A stretch of DNA of 57,412 nucleotides from Glycera tridactyla (GCA_965644265.1 OZ286466.1:70500589-70558000); one strand, 5' to 3'. Shown: positions 1 to 57,412, numbered from the stretch's first letter. Notes: generated from the letters alone by a model not told the origin. Program-made: numbers and translations.

Positions 1-24
1 AGACGTCATACGTCAATTACGTAC

Positions 25-11136: not shown

Positions 11137-11175
<39 letters not shown>

Positions 11176-16426: not shown

Positions 16427-16493
<67 letters not shown>

Positions 16494-16835: not shown

Positions 16836-16885
<50 letters not shown>

Positions 16886-28800: not shown

Positions 28801-31800
28801 CCATCAAAAGCCAGCATATTTGAAAAAAAAAAACGTATGAAAATCCCTAACCAGGTTTTGGCATGGTTAGACAGAGTTGTGTTGACATGTTTGGCATGTA
28901 TTCCTTGCATGATTCTTCGGCTTCGTCTCATCAGTGCACAGAGTAAGATGTTACAAAGTGGGTTTGTGTCACAGGGATCATATTTACCTATTGTAGTGCC
29001 ACAGGCCCTGTTCAGCACCCACTGATCAACATTTGGATGGTTTGTTTGAATTCTATCATACCAGTTAGGATCAATGTGCATGTAACACTTTCCATTGAAG
29101 TCAATGGCCAGGCACGACTGATTGGAAATACAGGCAGTCTGACATTGTTGAATATCAGGCGCAGATGGAACAACGATTCCGCCGAACGCTAGCTGATTCG
29201 GATAAGATTCCCATGAGACGGTACAATCTGAAATTGGATATATGGGTGTGATTGAATGGTTTTGCCATCCATGTATAGTTACATTGTGGAGTTGATTTAG
29301 TAATGCATAAGGTCTCTTCAACTCAAGCTGAATCTACTTGCGGAGGCTTCCCCCATTTTGGAAATACCTAGAGTAAGGGAAATCAGTTAACTCCTCCCTT
29401 ATGAGAAGGGTATGTCTTATTCTCTCTGTATCTTTGATCTATAACAAGCTACTATCATCCACTATCATCAACCGTAAACATGCCGATACTATTATCATTA
29501 ATTATCACCATCATCATTAATGTCATCATCATCGTTGGTATCATCATCATCTTCACGGTCCAAAATGACCCATGTGGTGTCAAGAGGACCTTAAACAATA
29601 CTCAATCAATGAATCATCTCCACGCTGATCATATATGTATCCTGTGTGTGCTATGTGTCCTGTCCTGTTTAGTACATTTTGTCCCACCTGTATTGTCGAA
29701 TGTGTCCTGTTTTCCATGTCTTGTATAGAATGTACCATTTCGTTCTACTGCTGATAATAACTAATCCACTTGAGCATGCAATACGACCTGAATGTCCATG
29801 CTATGTAGATGCAATTATCAAGTCAAATAAAACTCAAACTGAAGCTTCAAAGTAAGCATAATGCGAAATATGTATTACCTTCACAGTCTCGGTTCACCAC
29901 AAACTGGTCAACATTGGGGTGATTTGTTTGAATTCTGTCTTGCCAATTAGGATCCACATGCATGTAACACTTGCCATTGAAGTCAATGGCAAGGCATGAA
30001 CGATTGTTGAGACAAGCATTCTGACATTCCTGTACATTGGATGCTGATGGGACAACAATCCCACCAAATGCTAGCTGGGATGGGAAAAAATCCCATGTGA
30101 TTTTACAGCCTCCCGCTGAAATGGATTCCATCGAATCATGAAATGGATTAGTATCTGAGAAGCGTTTCATAGGTGATGGATATATCATTTTCTTTTGTTC
30201 ATTAAAATTGGCATGACCTTTCATCATATTGTAAATCGGTCCCCAGATTCTATATACATTTATATACAGGTATTCGCCTTAAATCTCAATGTACATTATT
30301 CTCAACGATTACTGTGATTTTGGATTTGTATCGAATTGTTATATCATAATTGTTTGTGTTAGCACTTGATACGACCTTTTAGGTCAAGTGTGATTATGTA
30401 TATATTTTTAACACAATAAAAAATTTCAAGTTCAAGTTCATTTGTCATATTGTGAGATTGATTTTTTTTCACATGTAATACATACATAAAATTGCCCTTA
30501 TAAAAGGACATCTCCGGATTGACGTATTATGCAAATACTGAGACCATACATCTGTTCAATAATTTTCTGACAACTTATAAATTTGAGTTAGTTGTGATGA
30601 TGACAATCATCGCTCGCCTAAGTTAGTTCATTGAACACTTGAAAGCTCATATTTAAATGAATCATATGCAAATGGAATCTGATTACCTTTGGAGCAGCCC
30701 TGAATTTATATGGCAATTTTTCGGAGAATTATAAGGAATGAAAATTATGATCAATTGTCCAAAAAAGTGCATACGGATCTTCTTTGGATGATGGATACCA
30801 ATTTCCTTGGTTATATATTGATGAGTTAAGACTTGTGGGATTCACCTGATGCATTTCGAGATGCAAAAATTAATTACCAATAATGCTAACCAGAATTTGA
30901 GAAGTATATCCGGATATGGAAGGGAAAGACACACCCTCAATATGACTAAAATTACCTTTGATATTTTAAGGTCACCTGTGGTAGTTGAAATTACGTTTCA
31001 CCGAAATTAATTATGATTTCACATTTGTACCTGGGGCTACATATGAATCATCTGGAGAGGAAAGACTGTTTTACCGGTCCACCACTTTCCATGCTGATAG
31101 AAGCGGAAATATGGGTTAATTCTTGGAAAAAAGCTATGGTTTGAAGCTGTAGGGTTAGATAAAGAAAGCTTTGAGCATGATAATTACCTATTGTGGTTCC
31201 ACAGGCTCGGTTTGGCACCCATTGATCAACATTAGGATGGTTAGTTTGAATTCTGTCTGACCAGTTAGGATCAACATGCATGTAACATTTTCCATTGAAA
31301 TCAATGGCAAGACACGATCGATTGTTTAGGCAAGCATTTTTACATTCCTCGACTGTAGGGGCACTAGGAACAACGATTCCACCGAAGGCAAGTTGATTAG
31401 GGAAAGATTCCCATGTAATACTACAATCAGGAGTTGCTGAAAATGAAGAGACATGTTTGAATTCCTTATGAATTTCGAAGGCGAACTTCGTTCCAGTATT
31501 GAAGCAGTTGTCACAAGATATGTTATCTGGGTATTGTTCATCGTAATTTATTCATTTCCAACTCATCACTATTGAATGCATTTTTGGCGGGTGCCCATTT
31601 TTCGAGGTGCCATCACATAACTATGATTGGATAACCAGCCATACCTCGAATGGTTGACATTCATGCATGTTCACCAGGGGATTTTCATGGAATTGAGAGC
31701 TGTGAATCTGTGGAGGCTTGTTTGTGATTCATTCTGGTTTGGCGGAGAACTGGTTTGCATTCCGGATATCCGGTGGTGTCATGTTTGTTTGCATTTATTG

Positions 31801-34800
31801 AAAGTCAGAGCAACTGTGGCTGATCGAGTGATTTGAAATGGTTTGTAATAATGCGCATGCGGTATTCTTGTTTGTATAATGATTTACAATCACAGATCTC
31901 TAGCAACATGCTCATTGAAAATACCCCATGTGACAGTTTATACTGGTGTAGTGCATGATGTTGAACAAGAAAAGGTAAGAATTACCTATTGTGGTGCCAC
32001 AGGCTCTGTTCAGTACCCATTGGTCTACATTTGGATGGTTGGTCTGGATGTTGTCAGACCAGTTAGGATCCAGATGCAAGTAACACTTGCCATTAAAGTC
32101 AATGGCTAGACATGACTGGTCATCGAGACAGGCCTTTTTACACTCCTCAGCGTTGGATGCTGATGGAACAACGATTCCACCAAAGGCTAGCTGGTTTGGG
32201 AAAGATTCCCATGAGATGCTACAGTCTGAAATTGAATGAGTATGAAATACAAGATGTATCCATAAAAAGATGGTTTGGATTTTGGAAGATGAGGACATGA
32301 CCAGAATACATGGTACAAACTTCAGAATGGTGGATGATTAGAAAATATATTCCGTGGAAATCTGGGCAGGATTACAAAACCTATCGTATTCTATTAGTTT
32401 TTTACTTCCACCCAAGTTATAGTTTTTGAGAGTATGTGACACATATTGTGATAAAAAGGTGAATTACCATCTGCACAGTTTTTTTCCAGCACCCATTGGT
32501 CAACCTCAGGATGATTCGTTTGGATTCTGTCTGGCCAGTTAGGATCCACATGCATGTAACACTTGCCATTGAAGTCAATAGCTAGGCATGACTGATTATT
32601 CAGACATTCATTCTGACATTCCTGTACATTGGATGCTGATGGGACAACAATCCCACCAAATGCTAGCTGTGATGGGAAGAAATTCCATGTAATGCTGCAG
32701 CCACCAGCTGAAATGAATAAGCATGGGTTCATCAATTGCGGAGATATATACATGTGTGGGTTTGCGACTTTACCCGGAGATTCTTATGTCATAATATCTT
32801 GCTTGAGTATAGTTGACACGGTAATGAATCAGGGCCGAATGCCTTAGATTGAACCGATTTCATATGCGAAATCGTCTACATTTCTGAAATCATGTGACAA
32901 TGCGAAAAATAAACTCTTTACCGCTATTGTATCATGCTATATCATTTCCAGCAAATGTCATGCCATCCACCAGCTATTTTGTTTCATATTGTCTGTTGTG
33001 TGCATCATGAACTGCAGAAATGATGTGATTGTATCATCAGTCAGAGATTATTCTCCCAAATTGAAATCCTGCATTGCTGAGTGATTTGAGTGTACATAAT
33101 TGAAGAAGACTGCATTTGAGGGTTTGTTTTAGCCAGAAAAGGGTTCGCACTGAGTAGGATATTTACCTATTGTGGTTCCACAAGCTCGGTTCGGCACCCA
33201 TTGATCAACATTAGGATGGTTAGTTTGAATTCTGTCTGACCAGTTAGGATCAACATGCATGTAACATTTTCCATTGAAATCAATGGCAAGACACGATCGA
33301 TTGTTCAGGCAAGCATTTTTACATTCTTCGACTGTAGGGGCACTAGGAACAACGATTCCACCGAAGGCCAGTTGATTAGGGAAAGATTCCCATGTGATAC
33401 TACAATCAGGAGTTGCTGAAAATGAAGAGACATGTTTGAATTGCGCATGGTTTTCAAAGGTGAACTTGGTTCAGTATTTATGCAGTTGTCACGAGATATG
33501 TTTCCTAGGTATTGTTCATTGTATTTTATTCATTTCCGACTATTTCTGACTCATCACAATGGGATGCAATTTTGGTGAGTGCCCATTTTTTTTGAGGTGT
33601 CATCACATCGCTATGATTGGATGACCAGCCATACCTCGAATGGTTGACATTCATGCATGTTTACCAGAGGATTTTCAGCGAGTTGAGAGCTGTGAATCTG
33701 TGGAGGCTTGTTTGTGATTCCTTTTGGTTTTGCGGAGAACTGGTTTGCATTCCAGATATCCGGTGGTGTCATGTTTGTTTGCATTTGTTGAAAGTCAGAG
33801 CTACTTTAGCTGATCGAGTGATTTGAAATGGTTTGTGATATAGCACATGCGGTATTCTTGTTTGTATCATGATTTACAATCACAGATCTCTAGCAACATG
33901 CTCATTGAAATAACCCCATGTGACAGTTTATACTGGTGTAGTGTATGATGTTGAACAAGAAAAGGTAAGAATTACCTATTGTGGTGCCACAGGCTCTGTT
34001 CAGTACCCATTGGTCTACATTTGGATGGTTGGTCTGGATGTTGTCAGACCAGTTAGGATCCAGATGCAAGTAACACTTGCCATTAAAGTCAATGGCTAGA
34101 CATGACTGGTCATCGAGACAGGCCTTTTTACACTCCTCAGCGTTGGATGCTGATGGAACAACGATTCCACCAAAGGCTAGCTGGTTTGGGAAAGATTCCC
34201 ATGAGATGCTACAGTCTGAAATTGAATGAGTATGAAATACAAGATGTATCCATAAAAAGATGGTTTGGATTTTGGAAGATGAGGACATGACCTGAATACA
34301 TTGTACAAACTTCAGAATGGTGGATGATTAGAAAATATATTCCGTGGAAATCTGGGCAGGATCACAAAACCCATCGTATTCTATTAGTTTTTTTACTTCC
34401 ACCCAAGTTTTAGTTTTTGAGAGTATGTGACACATATTGTGATAAAAAGGTGAATTACCATCTGCACAGTTTTTTTCCAGCACCCATTGGTCAACCTCAG
34501 GATGATTCGTTTGGATTCTGTCTGGCCAGTTAGGATCCACATGCATGTAACACTTGCCATTGAAGTCAATAGCTAGGCATGACTGATTATTCAGACATTC
34601 ATTCTGACATTCCTGTACATTGGATGCTGATGGGACAACAATCCCACCAAATGCTAGCTGTGATGGGAAGAAATTCCATGTAATGCTGCAGCCACCAGCT
34701 GAAATGAATAAGCATGGGTTCATCAATTGCGGAGATATATACATGTGTGGGTTTGCGACTTTACCCGGAGATTCTTATGTCATAATATCTTGCGTGAGTA

Positions 34801-37800
34801 TATTTGACACAGGTATCAATCAGGGACAAAAGCCGTAGATTGAACCGATTTCATATGCGAAATGGTCTACATTTCTGAAATCATGTGACAATGCAATAAA
34901 TAAACTCTTTACCACTATTGTATGATGCTCTAACATTTCCAGCAAACGTTATGCCATCCATCAGCTATTTTGTTTCATATTGTCTGTTGTGTGCATCATG
35001 GCCAGCAGAAATGATGTGAATGTATCATCAGTCAGAGATTATTCTCCCAAATTGAAATCCTGCATTGCTGAGTGATTTGAGTATACATAATCGAAGAAGA
35101 CTGCATTTGAGGGTTTGTTTCAGCCAGAAAAGGGTTTGCACTGAGCAGGATAATTACCTATTGTGGTTCCACAGGCTCGGTTCGGCACCCATTGATCAAC
35201 ATTAGGATGGTTAGTTTGAATTCTGTCTGACCAGTTAGGATCAACATGCATGTAACATTTTCCATTGAAATCAATGGCAAGACACGATCGATTGTTTAGG
35301 CAAGCATTTTTACATTCTTCGACTGTAGGGGCACTAGGAACAACGATTCCACCGAAGGCAAGTTGATTAGGGAAAGATTCCCATGTGATACTACAATCAG
35401 GAGTTGCTGAAAATGAAGAGACATGTTTGAATTCCTTATGAATTTCGAAGGCTTACTTCGTTCCAGTATTGAAGCAGTTGTCACAAGATATGTTATCTAG
35501 GTATTGTTCATTGTAATTTATTTATTTTCAACTCATCACTATTGGATGCAATTTTGGCGGGTGCCCATTTTTCGAGGTGCCATCACATAACTATGATTGG
35601 ATAACCAGCCATACCTCGGATGGTTGACATTCATGCATGTTCACCAGGGGATTTTCATTGAATTGAGAGCTGTGAATCTGTGGAGGCTTGTTTGTGATTC
35701 ATTTTGGTTTGGTGGAGAACTGGTTTGCAGTCCGGATATCCGGTGGTGTCATGTTTGTTTGCATTTATTGAAAGTCAGAGCTACTTCAGCACATCAAGTG
35801 ATTTGGAAGGGTTCGTAATAATGCGCATGCGGTATTCTTGTTTGTATCATGATTTACAATCACAGATCTCTAGCAACATGCTCATTGAAATTACCCCATG
35901 TGACAGTTTATACTGGTGTAGTGCATGATGTTGAACAAGAAAAGGTAAGAATTACCTATTGTGGTGCCACAGGCTCTGTGCAGTACCCATTGGTCTACAT
36001 TTGGATGGTTGGTCTGGATGTTGTCAGACCAGTTAGGATCCAGATGCAAGTAACACTTGCCATTAAAGTCAATGGCTAGACAAGACTGGTCATCGAGACA
36101 GGCCTTTTTACACTCCTCAGCGTTGGATGCTGATGGAACAACGATTCCACCAAAGGCTAGCTGGTTTGGGAAAGATTCCCATGAGATGCTACAGTCTGAA
36201 ATTGAATGAGTATGAAATACAAGATGTTTCCAGAAACAGATGGTTTGGATTTTGGAAGATGAGGACATGACCTGAATAGATTGTACAAACTTCAGAATGG
36301 TGGATGATTAGAAAATATATTCCGTGGAAATCTGGGCAGGATCACAAAACCCATCGTATTCTATTAGTTTTTTTACTTCCACCCAAGTTTTAGTTTTTGA
36401 GAGTATGTGACACATATTGTGATAAAAAGGTGAATTACCATCTGCACAGTTTTTTTCCAGCACCCATTGGTCAACCTCAGGATGATTCGTTTGGATTCTG
36501 TCTGGCCAGTTAGGATCCACATGCATGTAACACTTGCCATTGAAGTCAATAGCTAGGCATGACTGATTATTCAGACATTCATTCTGACATTCCTGTACAT
36601 TGGATGCTGATGGGACAACAATCCCACCAAATGCTAGCTGTGATGGGAAGAAATTCCATGTAATGCTGCAGCCACCAGCTGAAATGAATAAGCATGGGTT
36701 CATCAATTGAGGAGATATATACATGTGTGGGTTTGCAACTTTACCCGGAGATTCTTATGTCGTAATGTCTTGCGTGAGTATAGTTGACACAGTTATGAAT
36801 CAGGGCCAAATGCCTTAGATTGAACCGATTTCATATGCGAAATCGTCTACATTTCTGAAATCATGTGACAATGCAATAAATAAACTCTTCACCACTATTG
36901 TATCATGCTATATCATTTCCAGGAAACGTTATGCCATCCACCAGCTATTTTGTTTCATATTGTCTGTTGTGTGCATCATGGCCAGCAGAAATGATGTGAT
37001 TGTATCATCAGTCAGAGATTATTCTCCCAAATTGAAATCCTGCATTGCTGAGTGATTTGAGTGTACATAATTGAAGAAGACTGCATTTGAGGGTTTGTTT
37101 CAGCAAGAAAAGGGGCTGCACTGAGCAGGATAATTACCTATTGTGGTTCCACAGGCTCGGTTCGGCACCCATTGATCAACATTAGGATGGTTAGTTTGAA
37201 TTCTGTCTGACCAGTTAGGATCAACATGCATGTAACATTTTCCATTGAAATCGATGGCAAGACACGATCGATTGTTCAGGCAAGCATTTTTACATTCTTC
37301 GACTGTGGGGGCACTAGGAACAACGATTCCACCGAAGGCTAGTTGATTAGGGAAAGATTCCCATGTGATACTACAATCAGGAGTTGCTGAAAATGAAGAG
37401 ACATGTTTGAATTCCTCATGGTTTTCGAAAATGAACTTGGTTCAGTATTGATGCAGTTGTCACGAGATATGTTTCCTAGGTATTGTTCATTGTATTTTAT
37501 TCATTTCCGACTATTTCTGACTCATCACAATGGGATGCAATTTTGGTGAGTGCCCATTATTTTTGAGGTGTCATCACATCGCTATGATTGGATGACCAGC
37601 CATACCTCGAATGGTTGACATTCATGCATGTTTACCAGGGGACTGTCATGGCATTGAGAGCTGTGAATCTGTGGAGGCTTGTTTGTGATTCCTTTTGGTT
37701 TGGCAGGGAACTGCTTTGAATTCCAGATATCCGGTGGTTTATTTTTGTTTGCATTTATTGAAAGTCAGGTTTTCCTCAGCAGATTGAGTGATTTGAAAGG

Positions 37801-46800: not shown

Positions 46801-49800
46801 GAATCATGTGACAATGCAATAAATAAACTCTTTAACACTATTGTATCAAGCTATATTATTTCCAGGAAACGTTATGCCATCCACCAGCTATTTTGTTTCA
46901 TATTGTCTGTTGTGTGCATCATGGCCAGCAGAAATGATGTGATTGTATCATCAGTCAGAGATTATTCTCCCAAATTGAAATCCTGCATTGCTGAGTGATT
47001 TGAGTGTACATAATTGAAGAAGACTGCATTTGAGGGTTTGTTTCAGCCAGAAAAGGGGCTGCACTGAGCAGGATAATTACCTATTGTGGTTCCACAGGCT
47101 CGGTTCGGCACCCATTGATCAACATCAGGATGGTTAGTTTGAATTCTGTCTGACCAGTTAGGATCAACATGCATGTAACATTTTCCATTGAAATCAATGG
47201 CAAGACACGATCGATTGTTCAGGCAAGCATTTTTACATTCTTCGACTGTAGGGGCACTAGGAACAACGATTCCACCGAAGGCAAGTTGATTAGGGAAAGA
47301 TTCCCATGTGATACTACAATCAGGAGTTGCTGAAAATGAAGGGACATGTTTGAATTCCTCATGGTTTTCGAAGGTGAACTTGGTTCAGTATTGATGCAGT
47401 TGTCACGAGATATGTTCTTCAGGTATTGTTCATTGTATTCTATTCATTTCTGACTCATCACAATGGGATGCGTTTTTGGTGATTGCCCATTTTTCGAGGT
47501 GTCATCACATCGCTATGATTGGTTTACCAGCCATACCTCGAATGGTTGACATTCATGCATGTTTACCAGGGGATTGTCATGGCATTGAGAGCTGTGAATC
47601 TGTGGAGGGTTGTTTGTGATTCATTTTGGTTTGGCGGGGAACTGCTTTGCATACCAGATATCCGGTGGTCTATTTTTGTTCGCATTTATTGAAAGTCAGA
47701 GCTTCTTCTGCGGATTGAGTGATTTGAAAGGGTTCTTCATAATGCGCATGCGGTATTCTTGTCTGTATCATGATTTACAATCACAGAACTCTAGCAACAT
47801 GATCATTGAAATTACCCCATGTGACAGTTTATACTGGTGTAGTGCACGATGTTGGACTTGAAAAGGTAAGAATTACCTATTGTGGTGCCACAGGCTCTGT
47901 TCAGTACCCATTGGTCTACATTTGGATGGTTGGTCTGGATGTTGTCAGACCAGTTAGGATCCAGATGCAAGTAACACTTGCCATTAAAGTCAATGGCTAG
48001 ACATGACTGGTCATCGAGACAGGCCTTTTTACACTCCTCAGCGTTGGATGCTGATGGAACAACGATTCCACCAAAGGCTAGCTGGTTTGGGAAAGATTCC
48101 CATGAGATGCTACAGTCTGAAAACGAATGAGTTTGAAATACAAGATTTATCCATAAAAAGATGGTTTGGATTTTGGAAGATGAGGACATGACCTGAATAC
48201 ATGGTACTAACTTCAGAATGATGGATAATTAGAAAATATATTCCGTGGAAATCTGGACAGGAGGAATACAAAACCCATCGTATTCCATTAGTTCTTTACT
48301 TCCACCCAAGTTTTAGTTTTTGGAGTATGTGACACATATTGTGATAAAAATGTGAATTACCATCTGCACAGTTTTTGTCCAGCACCCATTGGTCAACCTC
48401 AGGATGATTCGTTTGGATTCTGTCTGGCCAGTTAGGATCCACATGCATGTAACACTTGCCATTGAAGTCAATAGCTAGGCATGACTGATTATTCAGACAT
48501 TCATTCTGACATTCCTGAACATTGGATGCTGATGGGACAACAATCCCACCAAATGCTAGCTGTGATGGGAAGAAATTCCATGTAATGCTGCAGCCACCAG
48601 CTGAAATAAATAAGCATGGGTTCATCAATTGCGGAGATATATGCATATGTGGGTTTGCGACTTTACCCGGAGATTCTTATGTCGTAATATCTTGCATGAG
48701 TATAGTTGACACAGTTATAAATCAGGACCGAATGCCTCAGATCGAACCGATTTCATATGCGAAATCGTCTACATTTCTGAAATCATGTGACAATGCAATA
48801 AATAAATTATTTACCACTATTGTATCATGCTATATCATTTCCAGGAAACGTTATGCCATCCACCAGTTATTTTGTTTCATATTGTCTGTTGTGTGCATCA
48901 TGGCCAGCAGAAATGATGTGATTGTATCATCAGTCAGAGATTATTCTCCCAAATTGAAATCCTGCATTGCTGAGTGATTTGAGTGTACATAATTGAAGAA
49001 GACTGCATTTGAGGGTTTGTTTTAGCCAGAAAAGGGTTCGCACTGAGCAGGATATTTACCTATTGTGGTTCCACAGGCTCGGTTCGGCACCCATTGATCA
49101 ACATTAGGATGGTTAGTTTGAATTCTGTCTGACCAGTTAGGATCAACATGCATGTAACATTTTCCATTGAAATCAATGGCAAGACATGATCGATTGTTCA
49201 GGCAAGCATTTTTACATTCTTCGACTGTGGGGGCACTCGGAACAACGATTCCACCGAAGGCTAGTTGATTAGGGAAAGATTCCCATGTGATACTACAATC
49301 AGGAGTTGCTGAAAATGAAGAGACATGTTTGAATTCCTCATGGTTTTCGAAGATGAACTTGGTTCAGTATTGATGCAGTTGTCACGAGATATATTTCCTA
49401 GGTATTGTTCATTGTATTTTATTCATTTCCGACTATTTCTGACTCATCACAATGGGATGCAATTTTGGTGAGTGCCCATTTTTTTTGAGGTGTCATCACA
49501 TCGCTATGATTTGATGACCAGCCATACCTCGAATGGTTGACATTCATGCATGTTTACCAGGGGACTGTCATGGCATTGAGAGCTGTGAATCTGTGGAGGC
49601 TTGTTTGTGATTCATTTTGGTTTGGCGGGGAACTGCTTTGCATTCCAGATATCCGGTGGTCTATTTTTGTTTGCATTTATTGAAAGTCGGAGCTTCTTCA
49701 GCAGATTGAGTGATTTGAAAGGGTTCTTCATAATGCGCATGCGGTATTCTTGTCTGTATCATGATTTACAATCACAGATCTCTAGCAACATGCTCATTGA

Positions 49801-52800
49801 AATCACCCCATGTGACAGTTTATACTGGTGTAGTGCACGATGTTGGACATGAAAAGGTAAGAATTACCTATTGTGGTGCCACAGGCTCTGTTCAGTACCC
49901 ATTGGTCTACATTTGGATGGTTGGTCTGGATGTTGTCAGACCAGTTAGGATCCAGATGCAAGTAACACTTGCCATTAAAGTCAATGGCTAGACAAGACTG
50001 GTCATCGAGACAGGCCTTTTTACACTCCTCAGCGTTGGATGCTGATGGAACAACGATTCCACCAAAGGCTAGCTGGTTTGGGAAAGATTCCCATGAGATG
50101 CTACAGTCTGAAAACGAATGAGTTTGAAATACAAGATGTATCAATAAAAAGATGGTTTGGATTTTGGAAGATGAGGACATGACCTGAATACATGGTACAC
50201 ACTTCAAAATGATGGATAATTAGAAAATATATTCCGTGGAAATCTGGACAGGAGGATTACAAAACCCATCGTATTCTATTAGTTCTTTACTTCCACCCAA
50301 GTTTTAGTTTTTGGAGTATGTGACACATATTGTGATAAAAATGTGAATTACCATCTGCACAGTTTTTTTCCAGCACCCATTGGTCAACCTCAGGATGATT
50401 CGTTTGGATTCTGTCTGGCCAGTTAGGATCCACATGCATGTAACACTTGCCATTGAAGTCAATAGCTAGGCATGACTGATTATTCAGACATTCATTCTGA
50501 CATTCCTGTACATTGGATGCTGATGGGACAACAATCCCACCAAATGCTAGCTGTGATGGGAAGAAATTCCATGTAATGCTGCAGCCACCAGCTGAAATAA
50601 ATAAGCATGGGTTCATCAATTGCGGAGATATATACATGTGTGGGTTTGCGACTTTACCCGGATATTCTTATGTCGTAATATCTTGCGTGAGTATATTTGA
50701 CACAGGTATCAATCAGGGCCGAATGCCTTAGATTGAACCGATTTCATATGCGAAATGGTCTATATTTCTGGAATCATGTGACAATGCAATAAATAAACTC
50801 TTTAACACTATTGTATCATGCTATATTATTTCCAGGAAACGTTATGCCATCCACCAGCTATTTTGTTTCATATTGTCTGTTGTGTGCATCATGGCCTGCA
50901 GAAATGATGTGATTGTATCATCAGTCAGAGATTATTCTCCCAAATTGAAATCCTGCATTGCTGAGTGATTTGAGTATACATAATCGAAGAAGACTGCATT
51001 TGAGGGTTTGTTTCAGCCAGAAAAGGGTTTGCACTGAGCAGGATAATTACCTATTGTGGTTCCACAGGCTCGGTTCGGCACCCATTGATCAACATTAGGA
51101 TGGTTAGTTTGAATTCTGTCTGACCAGTTAGGATCAACATGCATGTAACATTTTCCATTGAAATCAATGGCAAGACACGATCGATTGTTCAGGCAAGCAT
51201 TTTTACATTCTTCGACTGTAGGGGCACTAGGAACAACGATTCCACCGAAGGCAAGTTGATTAGGGAAAGATTCCCATGTAATACTACAATCAGGAGTTGC
51301 TGAAAATGAAGAGACATGTTTGAATTCCTCATGGTTTTCGAATTTGAACTTGGTTCAGTATTGATGCAGTTGTCACGAGATATGTTTCCTAGGTATTGTT
51401 CATTGTATTCGATTCATTCCTGACTCATCACAATGGGATGCATTTTTGGGGAGTGCCCATTTTTCGAGGTGTCATCACATCGCTATGATTGGATTTCCAG
51501 CCACACCTCGAATGGTTGACATTCATGCATGTTTACCAGGGGATTGTCATGGCATTGAGAGCTGTGAATCTGCGGAGGCTTGTTTGTGATTCATTTTGGT
51601 TTGGCGGGGAACTGCTTTGCATGCCATATATCCGGTGGTTTCATATTTGTTTGTATTTATTGAGTCAGAGCTGCTTCAGCAGATCAAGTGATATGAAAGG
51701 GTTCATAATAATGCGCATGTGGTATTCTTGTCTGTATCATGATTTACAATCACAGACCTCTAGCAACATGCTCATTGAATTTACCCCATGTGACAGTTTG
51801 TACTGGTGTAGTGCACGACGTTGGACATGAAAAGGTAAGAATTACCTATTGTGGTGCCACAGGCTCTGTTCAGTACCCATTGGTCTACATTTGGATGGTT
51901 GGTCTGGATGTTGTCAGACCAGTTAGGATCCAGATGCAAGTAACACTTGCCATTAAAGTCAATGGCTAGACAAGACTGGTCATCGAGACAGGCCTTTTTA
52001 CACTCCTCAGCGTTGGATGCTGATGGAACAACGATTCCACCAAAGGCTAGCTGGTTTGGGAAAGATTCCCATGAGATGCTACAGTCTGAAAACGAATGAG
52101 TTTGAAATACAAGATGTATCCATAAAAAGATGGTTTGGATTTTGGAAGATGAGGACATGACCTGAATACATGGTACTAACTTCAGAATGATGGATAATTA
52201 GAAAATATATTCCGTGGAAATCTGGACAGGAGGAATACAAAACCCATCGTATTCTATTAGTTCTTTACTTCCACCCAAGTTTTAGTTTTTGGAGTATGTG
52301 ACACATTTTGTGATAAAAATGTGAATTACCATCTGCACAGTTTTTTTCCAGCACCCATTGGTCAACCTCAGGATGATTCGTTTGGATTCTGTCTGGCCAG
52401 TTAGGATCCACATGCATGTAACACTTGCCATTGAAGTCGATAGCTAGGCATGACTGATTATTCAGACATTCATTCTGACATTCCTGAACATTGGATGCTG
52501 ATGGGACAACAATCCCACCAAATGCTAGCTGTGATGGGAAGAAATTCCATGTAATGCTGCAGCCACCAGCTGAAATGAATAAGCATGGGTTCATCAATTG
52601 CGGAGATATATACATGTGTGGGTTTGCGACTTTACCCGGAGATTCTTATGTCGCAATATCTTGCATGAGTATAGTTGACACAGTTATGAATCAGGGCCGA
52701 ATGCCTCAGATCGAACCGATTTCATATGCGAAATCGTCTACATTTCTGAAATCATGTGACAATGCAATAAATAAATTATTTACCACTATTGTATCATGCT

Positions 52801-55800
52801 ATATCATTTCCAGCAAACGTTATGCCATCCACCAGCTATTCTGTTTCATATTGTCTGTTGTGTGCATCATGAACAGCAGAAATGATGTGATTGTATCATC
52901 AGTCAGAGATTATTCTCCCAAATTGAAATCCTGCATTGCTGAGTGATTTGAGTGTACATAATTGAAGAAGACTGCATTTGAGGGTTTGTTTCAGCCAGAA
53001 AAGGGTTCGCACTGAGCAGGATATTTACCTATTGTGGTTCCACAGGCTCGGTTCGGCACCCATTGATCAACATTAGGATGGTTAGTTTGAATTCTGTCTG
53101 ACCAGTTAGGATCAACATGCATGTAACATTTTCCATTAAAATCAATGGCAAGACATGATCGATTGTTCAGGCAAGCATTTTTACATTCTTCGACTGTGGG
53201 GGCACTCGGAACAACGATTCCACCGAAGGCTAGTTGATTAGGGAAAGATTCCCATGTGATACTACAATCAGGAGTTGCTGAAAATGAAGAGACATGTTTG
53301 AATTCCTCATGGTTTTCCAAGGTGAACTTGGTTCAGTATTGATGCAGTTGTCACGAGATATATTTCCTAGGTATTGTTCATTGTATTTTTATTCATTTCC
53401 GACTATTTCTGACTCATCACAATGGGATGCAATTTTGGTGAGTGCCCATTTTTTTCGAGGTGCCATCACATCGCTATGATTGGATGACCAGCCATACCTC
53501 GAATGGTTGACATTCATGCATGTTTACCAGGGGATTGTCATGGAATTGAGAGCTGTGAATCTGTGGAGGCTTGTTTGTGATTCATTTTGGTTTGGCGGGG
53601 AACTGCTTTGCATTCCAGATATCCGGTGGTCTATTTTTGTTTGCATTTATTGAAAGTCGGAGCTTCTTCAGCAGATTGAGTGATTTGAAAGGGTTCTTCA
53701 TAATGCGCATGCGGTATTCTTGTCTGTATCATGATTTACAATCACAGATCTCTAGCAACATGCTCATTGAAATCACCCCATGTGACAGTTTATACTGGTG
53801 TAGTGCACGATGTTGGACATGAAAAGGTAAGAATTACCTATTGTGGTGCCACAGGCTCTGTTCAGTACCCATTGGTCTACATTTGGATGGTTGGTCTGGA
53901 TGTTGTCAGACCAGTTAGGATCCAGATGCAAGTAACACTTGCCATTAAAGTCAATGGCTAGACAAGACTGGTCATCGAGACAGGCCTTTTTACACTCCTC
54001 AGCGTTGGATGCTGATGGAACAACGATTCCACCAAAGGCTAGCTGGTTTGGGAAAGATTCCCATGAGATGCTACAGTCTGAAAACGAATGAGTTTGAAAT
54101 ACAAGATGTATCCATAAAAAGATGGTTTGGATTTTGGAAGATGAGGACATGACCTGAATACATGGTACTAACTTCAGAATGATGGATAATTAGAAAATAT
54201 ATTCCGTGGAAATCTGGACAGGAGGATTACAAAACCCATCGTATTCTATTAGTTTTTTTACTTCCACCCAAGTTTTAGTTTTTGAGAGTATGTGACACAT
54301 ATTGTGATAAAAAGGTGAATTACCATCTGCACAGTTTTTTTCCAGCACCCATTGGTCAACCTCAGGATGATTCGTTTGGATTCTGTCTGGCCAGTTAGGA
54401 TCCACATGCATGTAACACTTGCCATTGAAGTCAATAGCTAGGCATGACTGATTATTCAGACATTCATTCTGACATTCCTGTACATTGGATGCTGATGGGA
54501 CAACAATCCCACCAAATGCTAGCTGTGATGGGAAGAAATTCCATGTAATGCTGCAGCCACCAGCTGAAATGAATAAGCATGGGTTCATCAATTGCGGAGA
54601 TATATACATGTGTGGGTTTGCGACTTTACCCGGATATTCTTATGTCGTGATATCTTGCGTGAGTATATTTGACACAGGTATCAATCAGGGCCGAATGCCT
54701 TAGATTGAACCGATTTCATATGCGAAATGGTCTATATTTCTGAAATCATGTGACAATGCAATAAATAAACTCTTTAACACTATTGTATCATGCTATATTA
54801 TTTCCAGCAAACGTTATGCCATCCACCAGCTATTTTGTTTCATATTGTCTGTTGTGTGCATCATGGCCAGCAGAAATGATGTGATTGTATCATCAGTCAG
54901 AGATTATCCTCCCAAATTGAAATCCTGCATTGTTGAGTGATTTGAGTATACATAATCGAAGAAGACTGCATTTGAGGGTTTGTTTCAGCCAGAAAAGGGG
55001 CTGCACTGAGCAGGATAATTACCTATTGTTGTTCCACAGGCTCGGTTCGGCACCCATTGATCAACATTAGGATGGTTAGTTTGAATTCTGTCTGACCAGT
55101 TAGGATCAACATGCATGTAACATTTTCCATTGAAATCAATGGCAAGACACGATCGATTGTTCAGGCAAGCATTTTTACATTCTTCGACTGTAGGGGCACT
55201 AGGAACAACGATTCCACCGAAGGCTAGTTGATTAGGGAAAGATTCCCATGTGATACTACAATCAGGAGTTGCTGAAAATGAAGAGACATGTTTGAATTCC
55301 TCATGGTTTTCGAATTTGAACTTGGTTCAGTATTGATGCAGTTGTCACGAGATATGTTTCCTAGGTATTGTTCATTGTATTCTATTCATTCCTGACTCAT
55401 CACAATGGGATGCATTTTTGGTGAGTGCCCATTTTTCGAGGGGTCATCACATCGCTATGATTGGATTTCCAGCCACACCTCGAATGGTTGACATTCATGC
55501 ATGTTTACCAGGGGATTGTCATGGCATTGAGAGCTGTGAATCTGTGGAGGCTTGTTTGTGATTCATTTTGGTTTGGCGGGGAACTGCTTTGCATGCCATA
55601 TATCCGGTGGTTTCATATTTGTTTGTATTTATTGAGTCAGAGCTGCTTCAGCAGATCAAGTGATATGAAAAGTTTCATAATGATGCGCATGTGGTATTCT
55701 TGTCTGTATCATGATTTACAATCACAGACCTCTAGCAACATGCTCATTGAATTTACCCCATGTGACAGTTTGTACTGGTGTAGTGCACGACGTTGGACAT

Positions 55801-56541
55801 GAAAAGGTAAGAATTACCTATTGTGGTGCCACAGGCTCTGTTCAGTACCCATTGGTCTACATTTGGATGGTTGGTCTGGATGTTGTCAGACCAGTTAGGA
55901 TCCAGATGCAAGTAACACTTGCCATTAAAGTCAATGGCTAGACAAGACTGGTCATCGAGACAGGCCTTTTTACACTCCTCAGCGTTGGATGCTGATGGAA
56001 CAACGATTCCACCAAAGGCTAGCTGGTTTGGGAAAGATTCCCATGAGATGCTACAGTCTGAAAACGGATGAATTTGAAATACAAGATGTATCCATAAAAA
56101 GATGGTTTGGATTGTGGAAGATGAGGACATGACCTGAATACATGGTACACACTTCAGAATGGTGGATAATTAGAAAATATATTCCGTGGAAATCTGGACA
56201 GGAGGATTACAAAACCCATCGTATTCTATTAGTTCTTTACTTCCACCCAAGTTTTAGTTTTTGGAGTATGTGACACATATTGTGATAAAAATGTGAATTA
56301 CCATCTGCACAGTTTTTGTCCAGCACCCATTGGTCAACCTCAGGATGATTCGTTTGGATTCTGTCTGGCCAGTTAGGATCCACATGCATGTAACACTTGC
56401 CATTGAAGTCAATAGCTAGGCAGGACTGATTATTCAGACATTCATTCTGACATTCCTGTACATTGGATGCTGATGGGACAACAATCCCACCAAATGCTAG
56501 CTGTGATGGGAAGAAATTCCATGTAATGCTGCAGCCACCAG
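25..56541 (-). CDS. Giant multi-exon PAN/Apple-like tandem-domain protein with mucin-like linkers (partial: no start/signal peptide or stop codon found in window)
   Basis: About 54 exons flanked by polypyrimidine-AG and GT splice sites join into one open frame of about 4,400 aa; 49 repeats of C-x3-W-x5-Q-L-A-[FY]-G-G-x11-C-x3-C-x5-C-[LF]-A-I-D-F...C-Y-x-H...V-D-Q-W...C or diverged versions; six-Cys spacing typical of PAN/Apple modules. Confidence 0.85.
321..880 (+). repeat. Two diverged copies (about 321-560 and 650-880) of a putative interspersed repeat
   Basis: Both share TAACGTCA.GTCAGCT.TATTTG.GC and ACAGA.GG...AATT...AATTC.C.CAC.C.C.AGGTGTCATTT.T..T.GGGA. Confidence 0.5.
1447..1556 (-). 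CDS. Exon: C-terminal half of a split PAN-like domain (CYIHTMQSDLTDLTFDSGADFYTRVPC + Ser linker)
   Basis: Acceptor tctgtttcag|G, donor GCC C|gtaagg; 110 nt, phase 2-1, complements the exon at 2121-2268. Confidence 0.78.
1745..2120. repeat. Degenerate satellite, ~25-30-bp units of (GAATT)n + GATAACGTACGTT
   Basis: About 11-12 visible copies filling most of the intron that splits the PAN domain. Confidence 0.9.
2121..2268 (-). CDS. Exon: N-terminal half of a split PAN-like domain (CVDTFDKLDNTRSNGG...QCRNACLALGVCLGYTW)
   Basis: Acceptor ctttattacag|CT, donor AAA AC|gtacgt; 148 nt, phase 1-2; CxDTF..NT..GG start resembles exon 25-288. Confidence 0.78.
3080..3094 (-). CDS. Candidate 15-nt micro-exon (TTSA in phase 1)
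   Basis: Long pyrimidine tract + tacag acceptor and perfect GTGAGT donor; a 59-nt intron leads to another strong acceptor at 3021; frame and partners unresolved. Confidence 0.4.
3197..3229 (-). CDS. Candidate 33-nt micro-exon (DALDQVAPDY)
   Basis: ggactttcag acceptor, A|gtatgg donor, phase 1-1; no homology support. Confidence 0.25.
3928..4090. repeat. Minisatellite, ~22-32-bp unit CAGCATTCTTCCATAAAA..AAACAGG, about 6 copies
   Basis: Direct reading. Confidence 0.85.
4385..4780. repeat. Degenerate (CAC/ACC/GAC)n trinucleotide low-complexity tract, intronic
   Basis: Produces poly-T/P/H/D ORFs on + and poly-V/W on -; frames break and no splice-bounded frame fits the gene. Confidence 0.8.
4881..5030 (+). 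mobile_element. Dispersed non-autonomous repeat headed by (TTTG)n, copy 1
   Basis: (TTTG)n-AGG.TTAACGGCATGTATCAACCCTAGG.TTATGT.TGCC...TAGATGTTCTCTCC..GCAGACATC.CTCTCACAAA shared with 14183-14312 and the reverse strand at the window end. Confidence 0.7.
5905..6045. repeat. 54-bp tandem duplication (ATTTTACGGGTCAGTTCAAGTGCGACATTCA..TATTAAGTGC)
   Basis: Two full copies plus a partial one. Confidence 0.85.
6261..6563 (-). CDS. Exon: PAN-like domain + Ser/Thr/Pro linker
   Basis: ggttttccag|CT acceptor, CAA C|gtatgt donor; 303 nt, phase 1-1; ECVIIW..QLALGG..CQMACLSADPPCFAIDF..CFLH..VDQYVWSEEC. Confidence 0.9.
7144..7209 (-). CDS. Candidate linker exon (PSVLAPTPASTSAAYQKVSSH)
   Basis: Good acceptor ttttcgttgcag, P/S/T/A-rich frame; donor (T|gttatg) weak. 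Confidence 0.33.
7656..7739 (-). CDS. Ser/Thr-rich linker exon (MTSPTSQTSQTSVTTETTAKLTSSDTP)
   Basis: atatttcag|GA acceptor, CCT G|gtaatg donor; 84 nt, phase 1-1; not in ORF track. Confidence 0.7.
7950..8168. other. Assembly gap (N run)
   Basis: 219 N. Confidence 1.
10409..10743. other. Assembly gap (N run)
   Basis: 335 N. Confidence 1.
11138..11415. repeat. (CA)n tracts alternating with three copies of a ~65-bp unit (AATATACAACATCCACATTTTCACGAATCTCCTGGAAAACTGATATAACTTATAGTGCAAAGCA)
   Basis: Direct reading. Confidence 0.9.
11632..11745 (-). CDS. Ser-rich linker exon (PTQQSTVASTSSSSASSSSVSTSPPSRYQSSTDSILP)
   Basis: catatttccag|TA acceptor, CCC G|gtcaga donor; 114 nt, phase 1-1; the (TGA)n repeat on + reads as poly-Ser on -. 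Confidence 0.65.
12220..12385. repeat. 55-bp tandem repeat, three copies
   Basis: CTTGATGGCAAGATATCAC at 12220, 12275 and 12330. Confidence 0.9.
12711..12755 (-). CDS. Small linker exon (SFTSTTSVRDTEPF)
   Basis: gtcctttacag|CA acceptor, TTT G|gtcagt donor; 45 nt, phase 1-1. Confidence 0.55.
13755..13930. mobile_element. Tc1/mariner (pogo/Tigger-like) MITE
   Basis: Imperfect TIRs CAGTCTAACCTGTCCTAAGCGGC / reverse complement CATTCAAACCTGTTCTAAGCCGC; TA on the right flank; internal repeated AAGC.(G/A).CCAC motifs. Confidence 0.6.
14183..14312 (+). mobile_element. Dispersed (TTTG)n-headed repeat, copy 2
   Basis: Aligns by eye with 4881-5030. Confidence 0.7.
14394..14645 (-). CDS. Exon: PAN-like domain (SECSYTWQVFPRQLAYGG...)
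   Basis: gtattgcag|CA acceptor, ACT G|gtatgc donor; 252 nt, phase 1-1; six Cys. Confidence 0.9.
15450..15773 (-). CDS. Exon: PAN-like domain + Thr-rich tail (PGCRIEWDLYPEQLAYGG...TSIPTSIPTTS)
   Basis: tatattacag|CA acceptor, ACA A|gtatgt donor; 324 nt, phase 1-1. Confidence 0.88.
15843..16012. other. Assembly gap (N run)
   Basis: 170 N. Confidence 1.
16428..16490. repeat. (GT)n microsatellite
   Basis: About 31 units. Confidence 0.98.
16826..16897. repeat. (CT)n microsatellite
   Basis: Direct reading. Confidence 0.95.
17760..18320. repeat. Degenerate ~90-120-bp tandem repeat, about 5 copies, overlapping the donor of exon 18307-18579
   Basis: Recurring ACCTACT.GTTGG(G)TAGGC and TTCAACCCA motifs. 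Confidence 0.8.
18307..18579 (-). CDS. Exon: PAN-like domain (SDCEVSWTVYPDQLAYGG...)
   Basis: catattttgcag|CC acceptor, ACA A|gtaggt donor; 273 nt, phase 1-1. Confidence 0.88.
18598..19030. repeat. Degenerate ~140-160-bp tandem repeat, three copies, starting next to the acceptor of exon 18307-18579
   Basis: GCAAATGATCTACTGATACCCATATAATTGAATAAAGAG identical in two copies; third copy more diverged. Confidence 0.8.
19565..19915. repeat. (CT)n (19565-19710) and (GT)n (19820-19915) microsatellites
   Basis: Direct reading; source of the ERERER/THTHTH pseudo-ORFs. Confidence 0.97.
20124..20522. mobile_element. Fold-back (inverted-repeat) MITE-like element with ~150-bp arms ending in GTTGCCAT[GA]GCAAC
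   Basis: Left arm 20124-20278 matches the reverse complement of 20368-20522 (GGC.TGGCGCAATG.CAAT; TGGCACAATTTTTA.TT.GCC). Confidence 0.7.
21720..22180. mobile_element. Fold-back element with a perfect 18-bp palindrome AAGTTTCCATGGAAACTT (21938-21955) near its centre
   Basis: Inverted pairs CCATGGTTG/CAACCATGG, TACAGGCCGTTCC/GGAACGGCCTGTA, CATAGGGCC/GGCCCTATG. Confidence 0.7.
23374..24222 (-). CDS. Mucin-like (PTS) exon, 283 codons, with 51-aa internal repeats
   Basis: ctattttcag|AT acceptor, ACT G|gtaagt donor; 849 nt open in the Thr/Ser/Pro frame (ORF track shows only the part from Met at 23713); phase 1-1. Confidence 0.88.
23800..24205 (-). repeat. Coding tandem repeat, 153-bp unit, about 2.6 copies (TSTPxTEKTTPxTETSAKSTDGPISPTYTARSTAGLSSxSKTTAYVxTSTP)
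   Basis: GAGATATGGGACCATCAGTAC recurs at 23971 and 24124 (153 bp apart); third partial copy near 23820. Confidence 0.9.
24627..24779. other. Assembly gap (N run)
   Basis: 153 N. Confidence 1.
25252..25326. repeat. AT-rich 24-bp tandem repeat, about three copies
   Basis: ATATAATATAT.ATATATAACTGT repeats; gives the YIIYYIQL read-through in the ORF track. Confidence 0.85.
25342..25578 (-). CDS. Exon: PAN-like domain (PGCNIMWEYFPAQLAFGG...)
   Basis: gatttcag|CA acceptor, CCA G|gtaatg donor; 237 nt, phase 1-1. Confidence 0.92.
25950..26240. mobile_element. Fold-back element with GTTGCCATGGCAAC (25979-25992)
   Basis: Inverted pairs TCAGTGAA/TTCACTGA and CATGGTGTCT/AGACACCATG. Confidence 0.5.
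27218..27487 (-). CDS. Exon: PAN-like domain (TGCSITWDFFPSQLAFGGVVVPSASSVPECQTACLNDDSCLAIDFNGKCYIHSDPSWSDRIQTNHPNVDQWVVNRAC + linker)
   Basis: caacttcag|CA acceptor, ACA C|gtaggt donor; 270 nt, phase 1-1; absent from ORF track on - (no in-frame Met). Confidence 0.9.
28988..29227 (-). CDS. Exon: PAN-like domain, diverged relative of array types B/C
   Basis: caatttcag|AT acceptor, ATA G|gtaaat donor; 240 nt, phase 1-1. Confidence 0.92.
29879..30115 (-). CDS. Exon: PAN-like domain, diverged relative of array type A
   Basis: catttcag|CG acceptor, GAA G|gtaata donor; 237 nt, phase 1-1. Confidence 0.92.
31188..31436 (-). CDS. Array exon C, unit 1 (TPDCSITWESFPNQLAFGG...VPNRACGTTI)
   Basis: 249 nt, cag acceptor/gt donor, phase 1-1. 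Confidence 0.92.
31986..32225 (-). CDS. Array exon B, unit 1 (DCSISWESFPNQLAFGG...VLNRACGTTI)
   Basis: 240 nt, cag/gt, phase 1-1. Confidence 0.92.
32468..32707 (-). CDS. Array exon A, unit 1 (GGCSITWNFFPSQLAFGG...VLEKNCAD)
   Basis: 240 nt, cag/gt, phase 1-1. Confidence 0.92.
33167..33415 (-). CDS. Array exon C, unit 2
   Basis: 249 nt, cag/gt, phase 1-1. Confidence 0.92.
33976..34215 (-). CDS. Array exon B, unit 2
   Basis: 240 nt, cag/gt, phase 1-1. Confidence 0.92.
34459..34698 (-). CDS. Array exon A, unit 2
   Basis: 240 nt, cag/gt, phase 1-1. Confidence 0.92.
35158..35406 (-). CDS. Array exon C, unit 3
   Basis: 249 nt, cag/gt, phase 1-1. Confidence 0.92.
35956..36195 (-). CDS. Array exon B, unit 3 (LNR->LHR variant)
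   Basis: 240 nt, cag/gt, phase 1-1. Confidence 0.92.
36439..36678 (-). CDS. Array exon A, unit 3
   Basis: 240 nt, cag/gt, phase 1-1. Confidence 0.92.
37138..37386 (-). CDS. Array exon C, unit 4
   Basis: 249 nt, cag/gt, phase 1-1. Confidence 0.92.
37946..38185 (-). CDS. Array exon B, unit 4
   Basis: 240 nt, cag/gt, phase 1-1. Confidence 0.92.
38430..38669 (-). CDS. Array exon A, unit 4 (AFGG->AFDG variant)
   Basis: 240 nt, cag/gt, phase 1-1. Confidence 0.92.
39129..39377 (-). CDS. Array exon C, unit 5
   Basis: 249 nt, cag/gt, phase 1-1. Confidence 0.92.
39927..40166 (-). CDS. Array exon B, unit 5
   Basis: 240 nt, cag/gt, phase 1-1. Confidence 0.92.
40409..40648 (-). CDS. Array exon A, unit 5
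   Basis: 240 nt, cag/gt, phase 1-1. Confidence 0.92.
41108..41356 (-). CDS. Array exon C, unit 6
   Basis: 249 nt, cag/gt, phase 1-1. Confidence 0.92.
41916..42155 (-). CDS. Array exon B, unit 6
   Basis: 240 nt, cag/gt, phase 1-1. Confidence 0.92.
42400..42639 (-). CDS. Array exon A, unit 6 (AFGG->AFDG variant)
   Basis: 240 nt, cag/gt, phase 1-1. Confidence 0.92.
43099..43347 (-). CDS. Array exon C, unit 7
   Basis: 249 nt, cag/gt, phase 1-1. Confidence 0.92.
43908..44147 (-). CDS. Array exon B, unit 7
   Basis: 240 nt, cag/gt, phase 1-1. Confidence 0.92.
44392..44631 (-). CDS. Array exon A, unit 7 (NNQS->NDQS variant)
   Basis: 240 nt, cag/gt, phase 1-1. Confidence 0.92.
45091..45339 (-). 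CDS. Array exon C, unit 8
   Basis: 249 nt, cag/gt, phase 1-1. Confidence 0.92.
45900..46139 (-). CDS. Array exon B, unit 8
   Basis: 240 nt, cag/gt, phase 1-1. Confidence 0.92.
46382..46621 (-). CDS. Array exon A, unit 8 (EKN->DKN variant)
   Basis: 240 nt, cag/gt, phase 1-1. Confidence 0.92.
47081..47329 (-). CDS. Array exon C, unit 9
   Basis: 249 nt, cag/gt, phase 1-1. Confidence 0.92.
47877..48116 (-). CDS. Array exon B, unit 9
   Basis: 240 nt, cag/gt, phase 1-1. Confidence 0.92.
48361..48600 (-). CDS. Array exon A, unit 9 (EKN->DKN variant)
   Basis: 240 nt, cag/gt, phase 1-1. Confidence 0.92.
49060..49308 (-). CDS. Array exon C, unit 10
   Basis: 249 nt, cag/gt, phase 1-1. Confidence 0.92.
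49868..50107 (-). CDS. Array exon B, unit 10
   Basis: 240 nt, cag/gt, phase 1-1. Confidence 0.92.
50352..50591 (-). CDS. Array exon A, unit 10
   Basis: 240 nt, cag/gt, phase 1-1. Confidence 0.92.
51051..51299 (-). CDS. Array exon C, unit 11
   Basis: 249 nt, cag/gt, phase 1-1. Confidence 0.92.
51846..52085 (-). CDS. Array exon B, unit 11
   Basis: 240 nt, cag/gt, phase 1-1. Confidence 0.92.
52330..52569 (-). CDS. Array exon A, unit 11
   Basis: 240 nt, cag/gt, phase 1-1. Confidence 0.92.
53029..53277 (-). CDS. Array exon C, unit 12
   Basis: 249 nt, cag/gt, phase 1-1. Confidence 0.92.
53838..54077 (-). CDS. Array exon B, unit 12
   Basis: 240 nt, cag/gt, phase 1-1. Confidence 0.92.
54324..54563 (-). 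CDS. Array exon A, unit 12
   Basis: 240 nt, cag/gt, phase 1-1. Confidence 0.92.
55023..55271 (-). CDS. Array exon C, unit 13
   Basis: 249 nt, cag/gt, phase 1-1. Confidence 0.92.
55818..56057 (-). CDS. Array exon B, unit 13
   Basis: 240 nt, cag/gt, phase 1-1. Confidence 0.92.
56302..56541 (-). CDS. Array exon A, unit 13 (EKN->DKN variant; most 5' exon found)
   Basis: 240 nt, cag/gt, phase 1-1; it has an acceptor, so upstream exons must lie beyond the window or be unrecognised. Confidence 0.92.
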
Positions 56542-57299
56542 CTGAAATGAATAAGCATGGGTTCATCAATTGCGGAGATATATGCATGTGAGGGTTCGTG
56601 ACTTTACCCAGAGATTCTTATGTCGTAATATCTTGTTCAGGGTCTCTATAGATGGCAGCCACCAATGGGCGCGGGTCATTTTCTTTAAAGTGTTGCCATC
56701 GGGGATGATGTGGCCTAGGTGTAGCATCATCCCTTCTCTTCTTCTCTATATCTTTTGGAGTGGGGGGTTGAATGGAAACATACCTTGAAATTTCTCTATC
56801 ATCTGTCTAAAGGCATTTTCTACCAAAATTACACTATCACCAGATTTCTTTCTCTTCACCTCTTTCCAATCCCTCTAAGCTTTTCTTATCTCTTCAGTGA
56901 AATGGTCTCAGGTGTGGGTAGCTGACGGTTTGCCTGTAGCAGATATTGTCACTATGCAAAAAGCAGGTACCAGGCACACCAGTTCTGGGTTACTAGGGCT
57001 GCGACTAGGTTACTAGGTTGTGTGATGGCATTGTACTGCGAGCATAGGGCATACCATGATTGTAAAGCTGGCTAGAAGGTGACAGTTTGTCATTGAACAC
57101 ATTGGTTGAGTATTCTCCGAATCTAATGCCTCTCCTAGTGTCAAGTGCTGCGCTTTGCAAAAAAAAAGCATTGCTATCAGACTTGAGTGTTAACTTCCAG
57201 CCAGTTACATAGCTAGATATGCCATCATTAGATTCACTTTTTTTCATGAAGAGTAGGTAGAGGTGTGTCTGAACTGTCAGCTACTTCAACTTGACAACT

Positions 57300-57412
57300 T
57301 CTCAGGTTCCCCATCATCTTGTGTCCAGGGTTTGTGAGAGTGATGTCTGCAGTGGAGAGAACATCTAGCTTTCATTGACCAGGAACATACGGCATACATA
57401 ACCCTGTGGGTT
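57300..57412 (-). mobile_element. Dispersed (TTTG)n-headed repeat, copy 3 (truncated by window end)
   Basis: Reverse complement AACCC..GGGTTATGTATGCCGTATGTTCCTGGTCAATGAAAGCTAGATGTTCTCTCCACTGCAGACATCACTCTCACAAACCCTG matches the copies at 4921 and 14221. Confidence 0.72.

Follow-up and report, generated by a model that had tools for sequence, protein, structure and literature searches.

A run of near-identical exons raises three questions: what is the unit that has been repeated, how have the copies arisen and stayed alike, and what kind of protein would they encode? We addressed these questions for an exon array on the minus strand of a 57,412-nucleotide stretch of Glycera tridactyla DNA (GCA_965644265.1 OZ286466.1:70500589-70558000), referred to here as the window, with positions counted from its first letter. 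We consider it highly likely that this is a real intragenic tandem array, that it belongs to a giant minus-strand gene encoding a secreted-type protein with multiple PAN/apple domains, and that it grew by amplification of a domain trimer through unequal crossing-over. An earlier note, made from the sequence of the window, had already described a strongly homogenised, 13-fold amplification of a three-exon cassette (A-B-C) at 31170-56635, and its claims are taken up below together with the results that bear on them.

Anatomy and limits of the array

One 1,990-bp unit starting at 31170 was compared with the whole window using BLAST. It matched 13 head-to-tail copies extending from 31170 to 56635 at 93-97% identity, as the note had described. 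A splice-aware scan identified 39 exons on the minus strand, 13 each of A (240 nt), B (240 nt) and C (249 nt), arranged in the order A, B, C thirteen times over. The tandem units, each 1978-1994 bp in size, run on this strand from U1 at 56541 to U13 at 31188. The acceptors of all 39 exons are pyrimidine-rich (...tttcAG) and the donors are all GTAA. Every exon is in phase 1-1 with a length divisible by 3, and neither stops nor indels were found in any of them, in agreement with the note's statement that splice sites and frame are kept throughout. Of the three introns, A-to-B measures 242-246 bp and C-to-A is constant at 459 bp, while B-to-C falls into two length classes, short (546-549 bp) and long (559-560 bp). 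The coding part of each unit is 729 nt, or 243 codons, and the 13 units together account for 3,159 aa of PAN/apple domains. The locus therefore has a tandem, in-frame, multi-exon unit within one gene, which is the organisation of an LPA KIV-2-type exon array. Intronic RNA genes were not found over 31000-57412 by an Rfam gathering scan and ARAGORN. The core array, one example of each exon type and the element at the upstream limit are as follows.

31188..56541, minus strand: core array of 13 A-B-C units (BLAST, exon scan)
32468..32707, minus strand: example of exon A, 240 nt, with a 75-aa PAN core, CSITWNFFPSQLAFGG...VLEKNC (PAN_1 match, AlphaFold model, fold matches)
31986..32225, minus strand: example of exon B, 240 nt, CSISWESFPNQ...CLDDQSC...VLNRAC, then a GTTI linker (PAN_1 match)
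31188..31436, minus strand: example of exon C, 249 nt, TPDCSITWESFPNQ...VPNRAC, then a GTTI linker; the final exon of the array (PAN_1 match)
56636..57412, continuing to window-equivalent 57451, unstranded: interspersed retroposon of ~816 bp (genome copies, flanks compared with the intact intron)

The span given in the note held for the 13-unit core. At the 3' edge of the array, the homology of U13 ends ~16 bp past exon C. At 56635 the span required correction: the break in homology at this position is the insertion point of the retroposon, within the C-to-A intron that connects unit 1 to a 14th unit (unit 0) lying behind the element. The genome search gave more than 13,000 candidate copies of the retroposon, and 39 other scored copies were 94-95% identical. 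The element has a (CAAA)n-type tail, and comparison of its flanks with the intact intron revealed a ~13-bp target-site duplication of intron sequence, TCGTAATATCT(T/C)G. ARAGORN, in its scan to 57412, called no tRNA-like gene in the retroposon.

The 14th unit occupies window-equivalent 57452-59458, beyond the window. All three exons of this unit are intact, as are their splice signals, and its introns are only 84-88% identical to those of the other units. The array thus totals 14 units with 42 intact exons encoding ~3,400 aa. A further C-like exon at window-equivalent 61005 is sister to the C clade in the tree described below. The higher divergence of the edge unit is expected if exchange is rarer at the ends of an array; the unit may also have originated from a sister lineage. 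We also observed, in the A-to-B intron of this unit, a stop-containing fragment of ~200 bp that copies, in part, the 3' half of exon A and the start of its intron (window-equivalent 58974-59143) and is probably the scar of an out-of-register or illegitimate recombination.

Tandem units of 2 kb that are up to 99.6% identical (U8/U10) are a classic source of mis-assembly, and in an artefact of this kind the true array would be shorter or differently sized, making 13-14 units the wrong number. We regard this as highly improbable. All 13 units can be told apart by 2-19 private substitutions each, and pairwise identity between whole units ranges from 94.1 to 99.6% and never reaches 100%. The units carry structured mosaic haplotypes and the two intron length classes. 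No N run interrupts the array; those of the window, four in number, lie below 24780. Finally, a six-frame search of the 207-contig, 2.04-Gb assembly, in which one haplotype is present, revealed no second copy of the array elsewhere.

The encoded PAN/apple domain and the age of the trimer

Each exon encodes one PAN/apple domain. The Pfam family PAN_1 (PF00024) was matched by exons A, B and C with 28.1, 27.3 and 26.5 bits, respectively, against a gathering cut-off of 21.4 bits, in matches that cover only the centre of the profile (positions 17-58 of 76). We built an alignment (A1) from 41 sequences, comprising the gene's own diverged modules and single-domain relatives. With this alignment, the AlphaFold model of exon A reached a predicted local distance difference test score (pLDDT) of 96.2, compared to a pLDDT of 50 in a single-sequence run. 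The leading Foldseek matches to the model in the PDB were all PAN/apple modules, with template modelling (TM) scores of 0.57-0.68 at E-values of only 1e-3 to 1e-1. They include the leech anti-platelet protein (LAPP; 1i8n, TM 0.68), the PAN domain of a fungal copper oxidase, the N domain of HGF, the PAp domain of plasminogen, the apple domains of factor XI and prekallikrein, and the Sarcocystis lectin SML-2. When the A1 profile was searched against PDB sequences, 1i8n again ranked first (E = 0.0011) and aligned nearly end to end. An ESM Atlas feature search returned PAN clusters with scores of 0.95-0.96.

Six cysteines per module (positions 3, 30, 34, 40, 49 and 77 of exon A) show no or almost no variation in the 41-sequence alignment. 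The profile score, the fold (one central helix against an antiparallel sheet) and the cysteine framework (four core cysteines, six in apple domains) are those of PAN/apple domains, and we assign the modules to this family. Only three residues separate the last cysteine of A from the first cysteine of B, and the B-to-C and C-to-A linkers are 7-8 residues long (GTTIA...). PAN/apple modules (PF00024) are extracellular domains that bind protein or carbohydrate.

A search of 1.84 billion representatives returned 108 matches. The nearest named relatives are Helobdella robusta proteins that combine a PAN array with VWA and C1q domains, and the leech relatives share 30-55% identity per domain. A close relative or sister-species orthologue was not found among these representatives, the best per-domain identity being 55%, and the nearest relative fragment lies on a 503-bp ENA contig without context.

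A tree of 89 module cores placed each exon type in a single clade, with a Shimodaira-Hasegawa-like approximate likelihood ratio test (SH-aLRT) support of 98-99. The stems of these clades measure 0.10-0.12 substitutions per site and the internal branches are tiny. Between exon types, the proportion of synonymous differences (pS) is 0.55-0.75, which is saturated. The three kinds of intron, compared for an origin from an exon-plus-intron monomer, have no similarity left among them. Collectively, the clades, the saturated pS and the unrelated introns indicate that the trimer is old and was amplified as a block. These results support the note's view that the three types remain distinct and that the amplified unit is a domain trimer. 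The note had also proposed a phylogeny of the 13 units as a check; here the exon types came out as monophyletic, and for the units themselves we obtained pairwise identities of 94.1-99.6%.

Selection and exchange between units

The note had ascribed strong homogenisation to the array. Between units, exons are 98.3-99.6% identical and introns 92-95%. Variable columns make up 25 of 729 in the exons compared to 266 of 1268 in the introns (Fisher P = 2e-31), and 20 of the 25 variable exon sites are synonymous, leaving five amino-acid differences across the 39 exons. Ten indel events were counted in the introns and none in the exons (P = 0.003). Within an exon type, pS is 0.040 and the proportion of nonsynonymous differences (pN) is 0.0020, giving a pN/pS of 0.049. 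Mean intron divergence is 0.046-0.079, with a maximum of 12%, and is about equal to the synonymous divergence. Since pS is close to intron divergence and pN/pS is 0.049, the near-identity of the peptides is explained by purifying selection on every copy rather than by extra homogenisation of the exons. The strength of homogenisation had thus been overstated, with introns differing by 4.6-7.9% and synonymous sites by 4.0%, although the exchange between units that it implies was detected, as described below. Selection of this kind on each copy also speaks for translation of them all.

This result bears on whether the array could serve as a bank of alternative exons, from which transcripts take a subset of the units, either as cassettes or in a mutually exclusive, Dscam-style manner, so that the protein would be shorter and variable in length. 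Skipping would keep the frame, because every exon is in phase 1-1 and divisible by 3. However, the 13-14 copies of each type give almost one peptide, with five amino-acid differences in 39 exons, and a choice among them yields no diversity. Each copy is under strong purifying selection and the splice signals are strong and uniform. Furthermore, an Rfam scan turned up neither an RNA family nor a conserved intronic element of the docking or selector type. We therefore consider an exon bank very unlikely. All 42 exons would most likely be spliced into one mRNA, since purifying selection holds every exon.

The haplotypes of the units are mosaic, with blocks common to non-adjacent units. In U12, for example, the first third resembles U11 and U13 and the middle resembles U7. 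The four-gamete test was failed by 24% of informative site pairs, and these incompatibilities are clustered by distance, as measured by a statistic like the pairwise homoplasy index (PHI), which was matched in 0 of 2000 permutations. The Hudson-Kaplan bound (Rm) sets a minimum of 27 events. These observations are clear evidence of sequence exchange between units, one of the marks of concerted evolution.

The closest pairs of units are two apart: U1/U3 (98.4%), U2/U4 (98.7%), U8/U10 (99.6%) and U9/U11 (98.6%). Mean identity is higher at lag 2 (97.2%) than at lag 1 (95.8%), a pattern matched by 9 of 5000 shuffles. Along the array, the short (S) and long (L) classes of the B-to-C intron follow the order S L S L S L L L S L S L S. 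The lag-2 pairing and the alternating classes suggest that the latest events duplicated two units at once, giving a higher-order repeat of six exons and ~3.97 kb. The recent duplications in a two-unit register bear out the events of exchange and amplification that the note had proposed.

A mean neutral divergence of 4-8% between units is appreciable, and selection explains the identity of the peptides without homogenisation. Both observations would be compatible with a single recent burst of amplification followed by passive divergence, with no ongoing homogenisation and with a copy number that is fixed in the species. Under such a burst, however, the ages of unit pairs would not be expected to range as widely as they do, from 0.4% to 6% difference. 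Nor would it account for the mosaic units with their Rm of at least 27, for the lag-2 periodicity or for the edge unit, which is more diverged at 84-88% identity. The spread of ages, the mosaics, the lag-2 periodicity and the edge divergence suggest repeated events over time, the latest of them very recent, and we regard a single burst as unlikely.

Together, these results can be accommodated in the following scheme of amplification by unequal crossing-over. The starting unit would have been a ~1.98-kb block, old and already diverged, that comprised the neighbouring exons A, B and C and their three unrelated introns. Unequal crossing-over between misaligned units may then have raised its number to 14 copies, with recombination adding or removing whole trimers only. 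Exact shared tracts measure 140-767 bp between units in register, more than enough for homologous recombination to act on, compared to 14-17 bp between exon types. Because exact tracts are long in register and at most 17 bp between types, misalignment would be limited to whole units, and this limitation would explain why A, B and C stay distinct and why the frame is unbroken. The most recent events would have copied two units, forming the six-exon, ~3.97-kb super-repeat, while exchange between units would have produced the mosaics. The unit at the 5' edge, cut off by the retroposon, would have drifted further. Segregating length variants are plausible, since the youngest duplicates differ by only 0.4%.

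Gene context, predicted product and known systems

The six-frame search of the genome gave ~100 occurrences of the module on the strand of the array, over a region that begins 20 kb below the window and reaches 40 kb above it. The cysteine framework is intact in 93 cores of 75-78 aa, which lie in the window and its flanks between window-equivalent 94430 and 6325. The features on the 3' side of the array and those bordering the exon series are listed here.

25342..30109, minus strand: four PAN exons, single and diverged, on the 3' side of the array; cores at 30107-29883, 29225-29001, 27479-27255 and 25570-25346 (core comparison, tree)
23330..24250, minus strand: 307-aa open frame, Ser/Thr/Pro-rich, including 2.6 copies of a 153-bp tandem repeat (93% matches)
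6325..18571, minus strand: four more distant PAN exons with 77-78 aa cores at 18571-18341, 15765-15535, 14637-14407 and 6558-6325, 43-51% identical to exon A
1..20 of the window with window-equivalent -1200 to 12, and also ~101000-101700: (TCTA)n-type microsatellites

The cores of the four single exons nearest to the array are 72-85% identical to exon A at the protein level and belong to the same exon series. The Ser/Thr/Pro-rich frame of 307 aa matched no Pfam family and is probably a mucin-like linker exon of the array's gene. Two further exon arrays were found upstream, at window-equivalent 68797-79192 and 82053-87705. One is a four-exon array with a unit of ~2.6 kb, whose units are 88-89% identical. 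The other is a one-exon array with a unit of 1.09 kb, whose five units are 93-99% identical. Both are older than, or of the same age as, the A-B-C array.

Two side observations concern the surroundings of the series and the rest of the genome. Tetranucleotide microsatellites of the (TCTA)n type, translating as (SIYL)n, stand on both sides of the PAN exon series. Clusters of PAN-like exons also occur elsewhere in the genome, at C42:45739975-45788525, C42:73300018-73463311, C28:31599583-31615451 and C32:47040649-47056822. The exons of these clusters are 28-45% identical to exon A, which suggests that several further multi-PAN genes are present.

The product of the array's gene would most likely be a very long, glycosylated, beaded extracellular protein with a role in adhesion, matrix or recognition. 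To this protein the array would most likely supply 42 nearly identical binding modules over ~3,400 residues, and with them a high valency.

Several points weigh against the reading of the locus as one giant gene whose array is spliced in full and still turns over. The exons of the wider region may be divided among two or more genes. The splicing of the 42 exons and the copy number are both read from sequence. On one species and one haplotype, a single recent burst with subsequent divergence is not cleanly separable from continuing concerted evolution. In addition, the ligand and the biological role are suggested by the fold family and by distant leech relatives only (30-55% identity per domain). 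With these points in mind, we offer tentatively, as a possibility that is still somewhat doubtful, a broader reading in which the whole locus is one gene. Its product, exceeding 7,500 aa and carrying 93 or more modules, might then be the largest PAN/apple-repeat protein on record, built from three independent arrays (with periods of one, three and four exons) and a six-exon super-repeat. The number of A-B-C units would be segregating, making the gene an invertebrate counterpart of LPA whose extracellular binding product differs in valency from one individual to another.

LPA, NBPF, mucins and nebulin are among the well-known examples of proteins that grew by amplification of repeats. The array is a tidy case of this phenomenon, and what is new lies in the PAN/apple family, the lineage and the hierarchical periodicity of exon, trimer and hexamer. 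In the coding variable number tandem repeat of LPA KIV-2, a 5.6-kb unit of two exons is present in 1-40 copies per allele (PMC11462820, PMC11201333). As in LPA KIV-2, a kilobase-sized, multi-exon, domain-coding unit is repeated in tandem within one gene, introns included, with unequal crossing-over in both cases; the exons are in frame, so that copy number sets protein length. In LPA KIV-2, however, two exons encode one kringle, whereas the 2-kb unit of the array has three exons for three PAN domains. The units of LPA KIV-2 are also near-identical and known to number from 1 to 40 per allele, whereas those of the array differ by 0.4-6% and are known from one haplotype.

The Olduvai triplets of NBPF form 3mer higher-order repeats (PMC9584774). 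Like the array, they are a coding higher-order repeat in which three copies of a single domain type, diverged from one another, form the amplified trimer, and the subtypes stay distinct. They are primate-specific, and they are built from the Olduvai/DUF1220 domain, with two exons per domain and a unit of ~4.7 kb. In contrast, the array has one exon per domain and an additional two-unit (six-exon) super-repeat.

Schueler and Bornberg-Bauer (2016; PMC5100051) described concertedly evolving domain repeats of metazoans, which they proposed to be volatile in copy number and often extracellular or related to host-pathogen interaction. The array shares with these repeats a high repeat purity and a recombination (PHI) signal within one protein. 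Their survey used cDNA and protein sequences, whereas here introns are on hand, and synonymous divergence is about equal to that of the introns.

The best sequence and structure matches, the Helobdella robusta protein T1FVV8 (PAN array, VWA and C1q) and LAPP (1i8n), belong to the same domain subfamily as the modules of the array. Long runs of PAN modules are also a feature of the leech multi-PAN proteins. These proteins have at most ~16 PAN modules, compared to at least 93 PAN exons here, and the identity per domain is 30-55%. LAPP binds collagen, and the protein encoded by the array is likened to it by sequence and predicted fold.

The locus provides an intron-resolved example of how a modular extracellular protein can grow: symmetric exons of one domain each let crossing-over add domain trimers in frame, and the introns let selection (pN/pS 0.05) be told apart from homogenisation. 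Should the number of units vary between individuals, the long-read assembly of coding repeats could usefully be benchmarked on the locus, which would also be a natural system in which the valency of PAN-type adhesion and recognition differs between animals.

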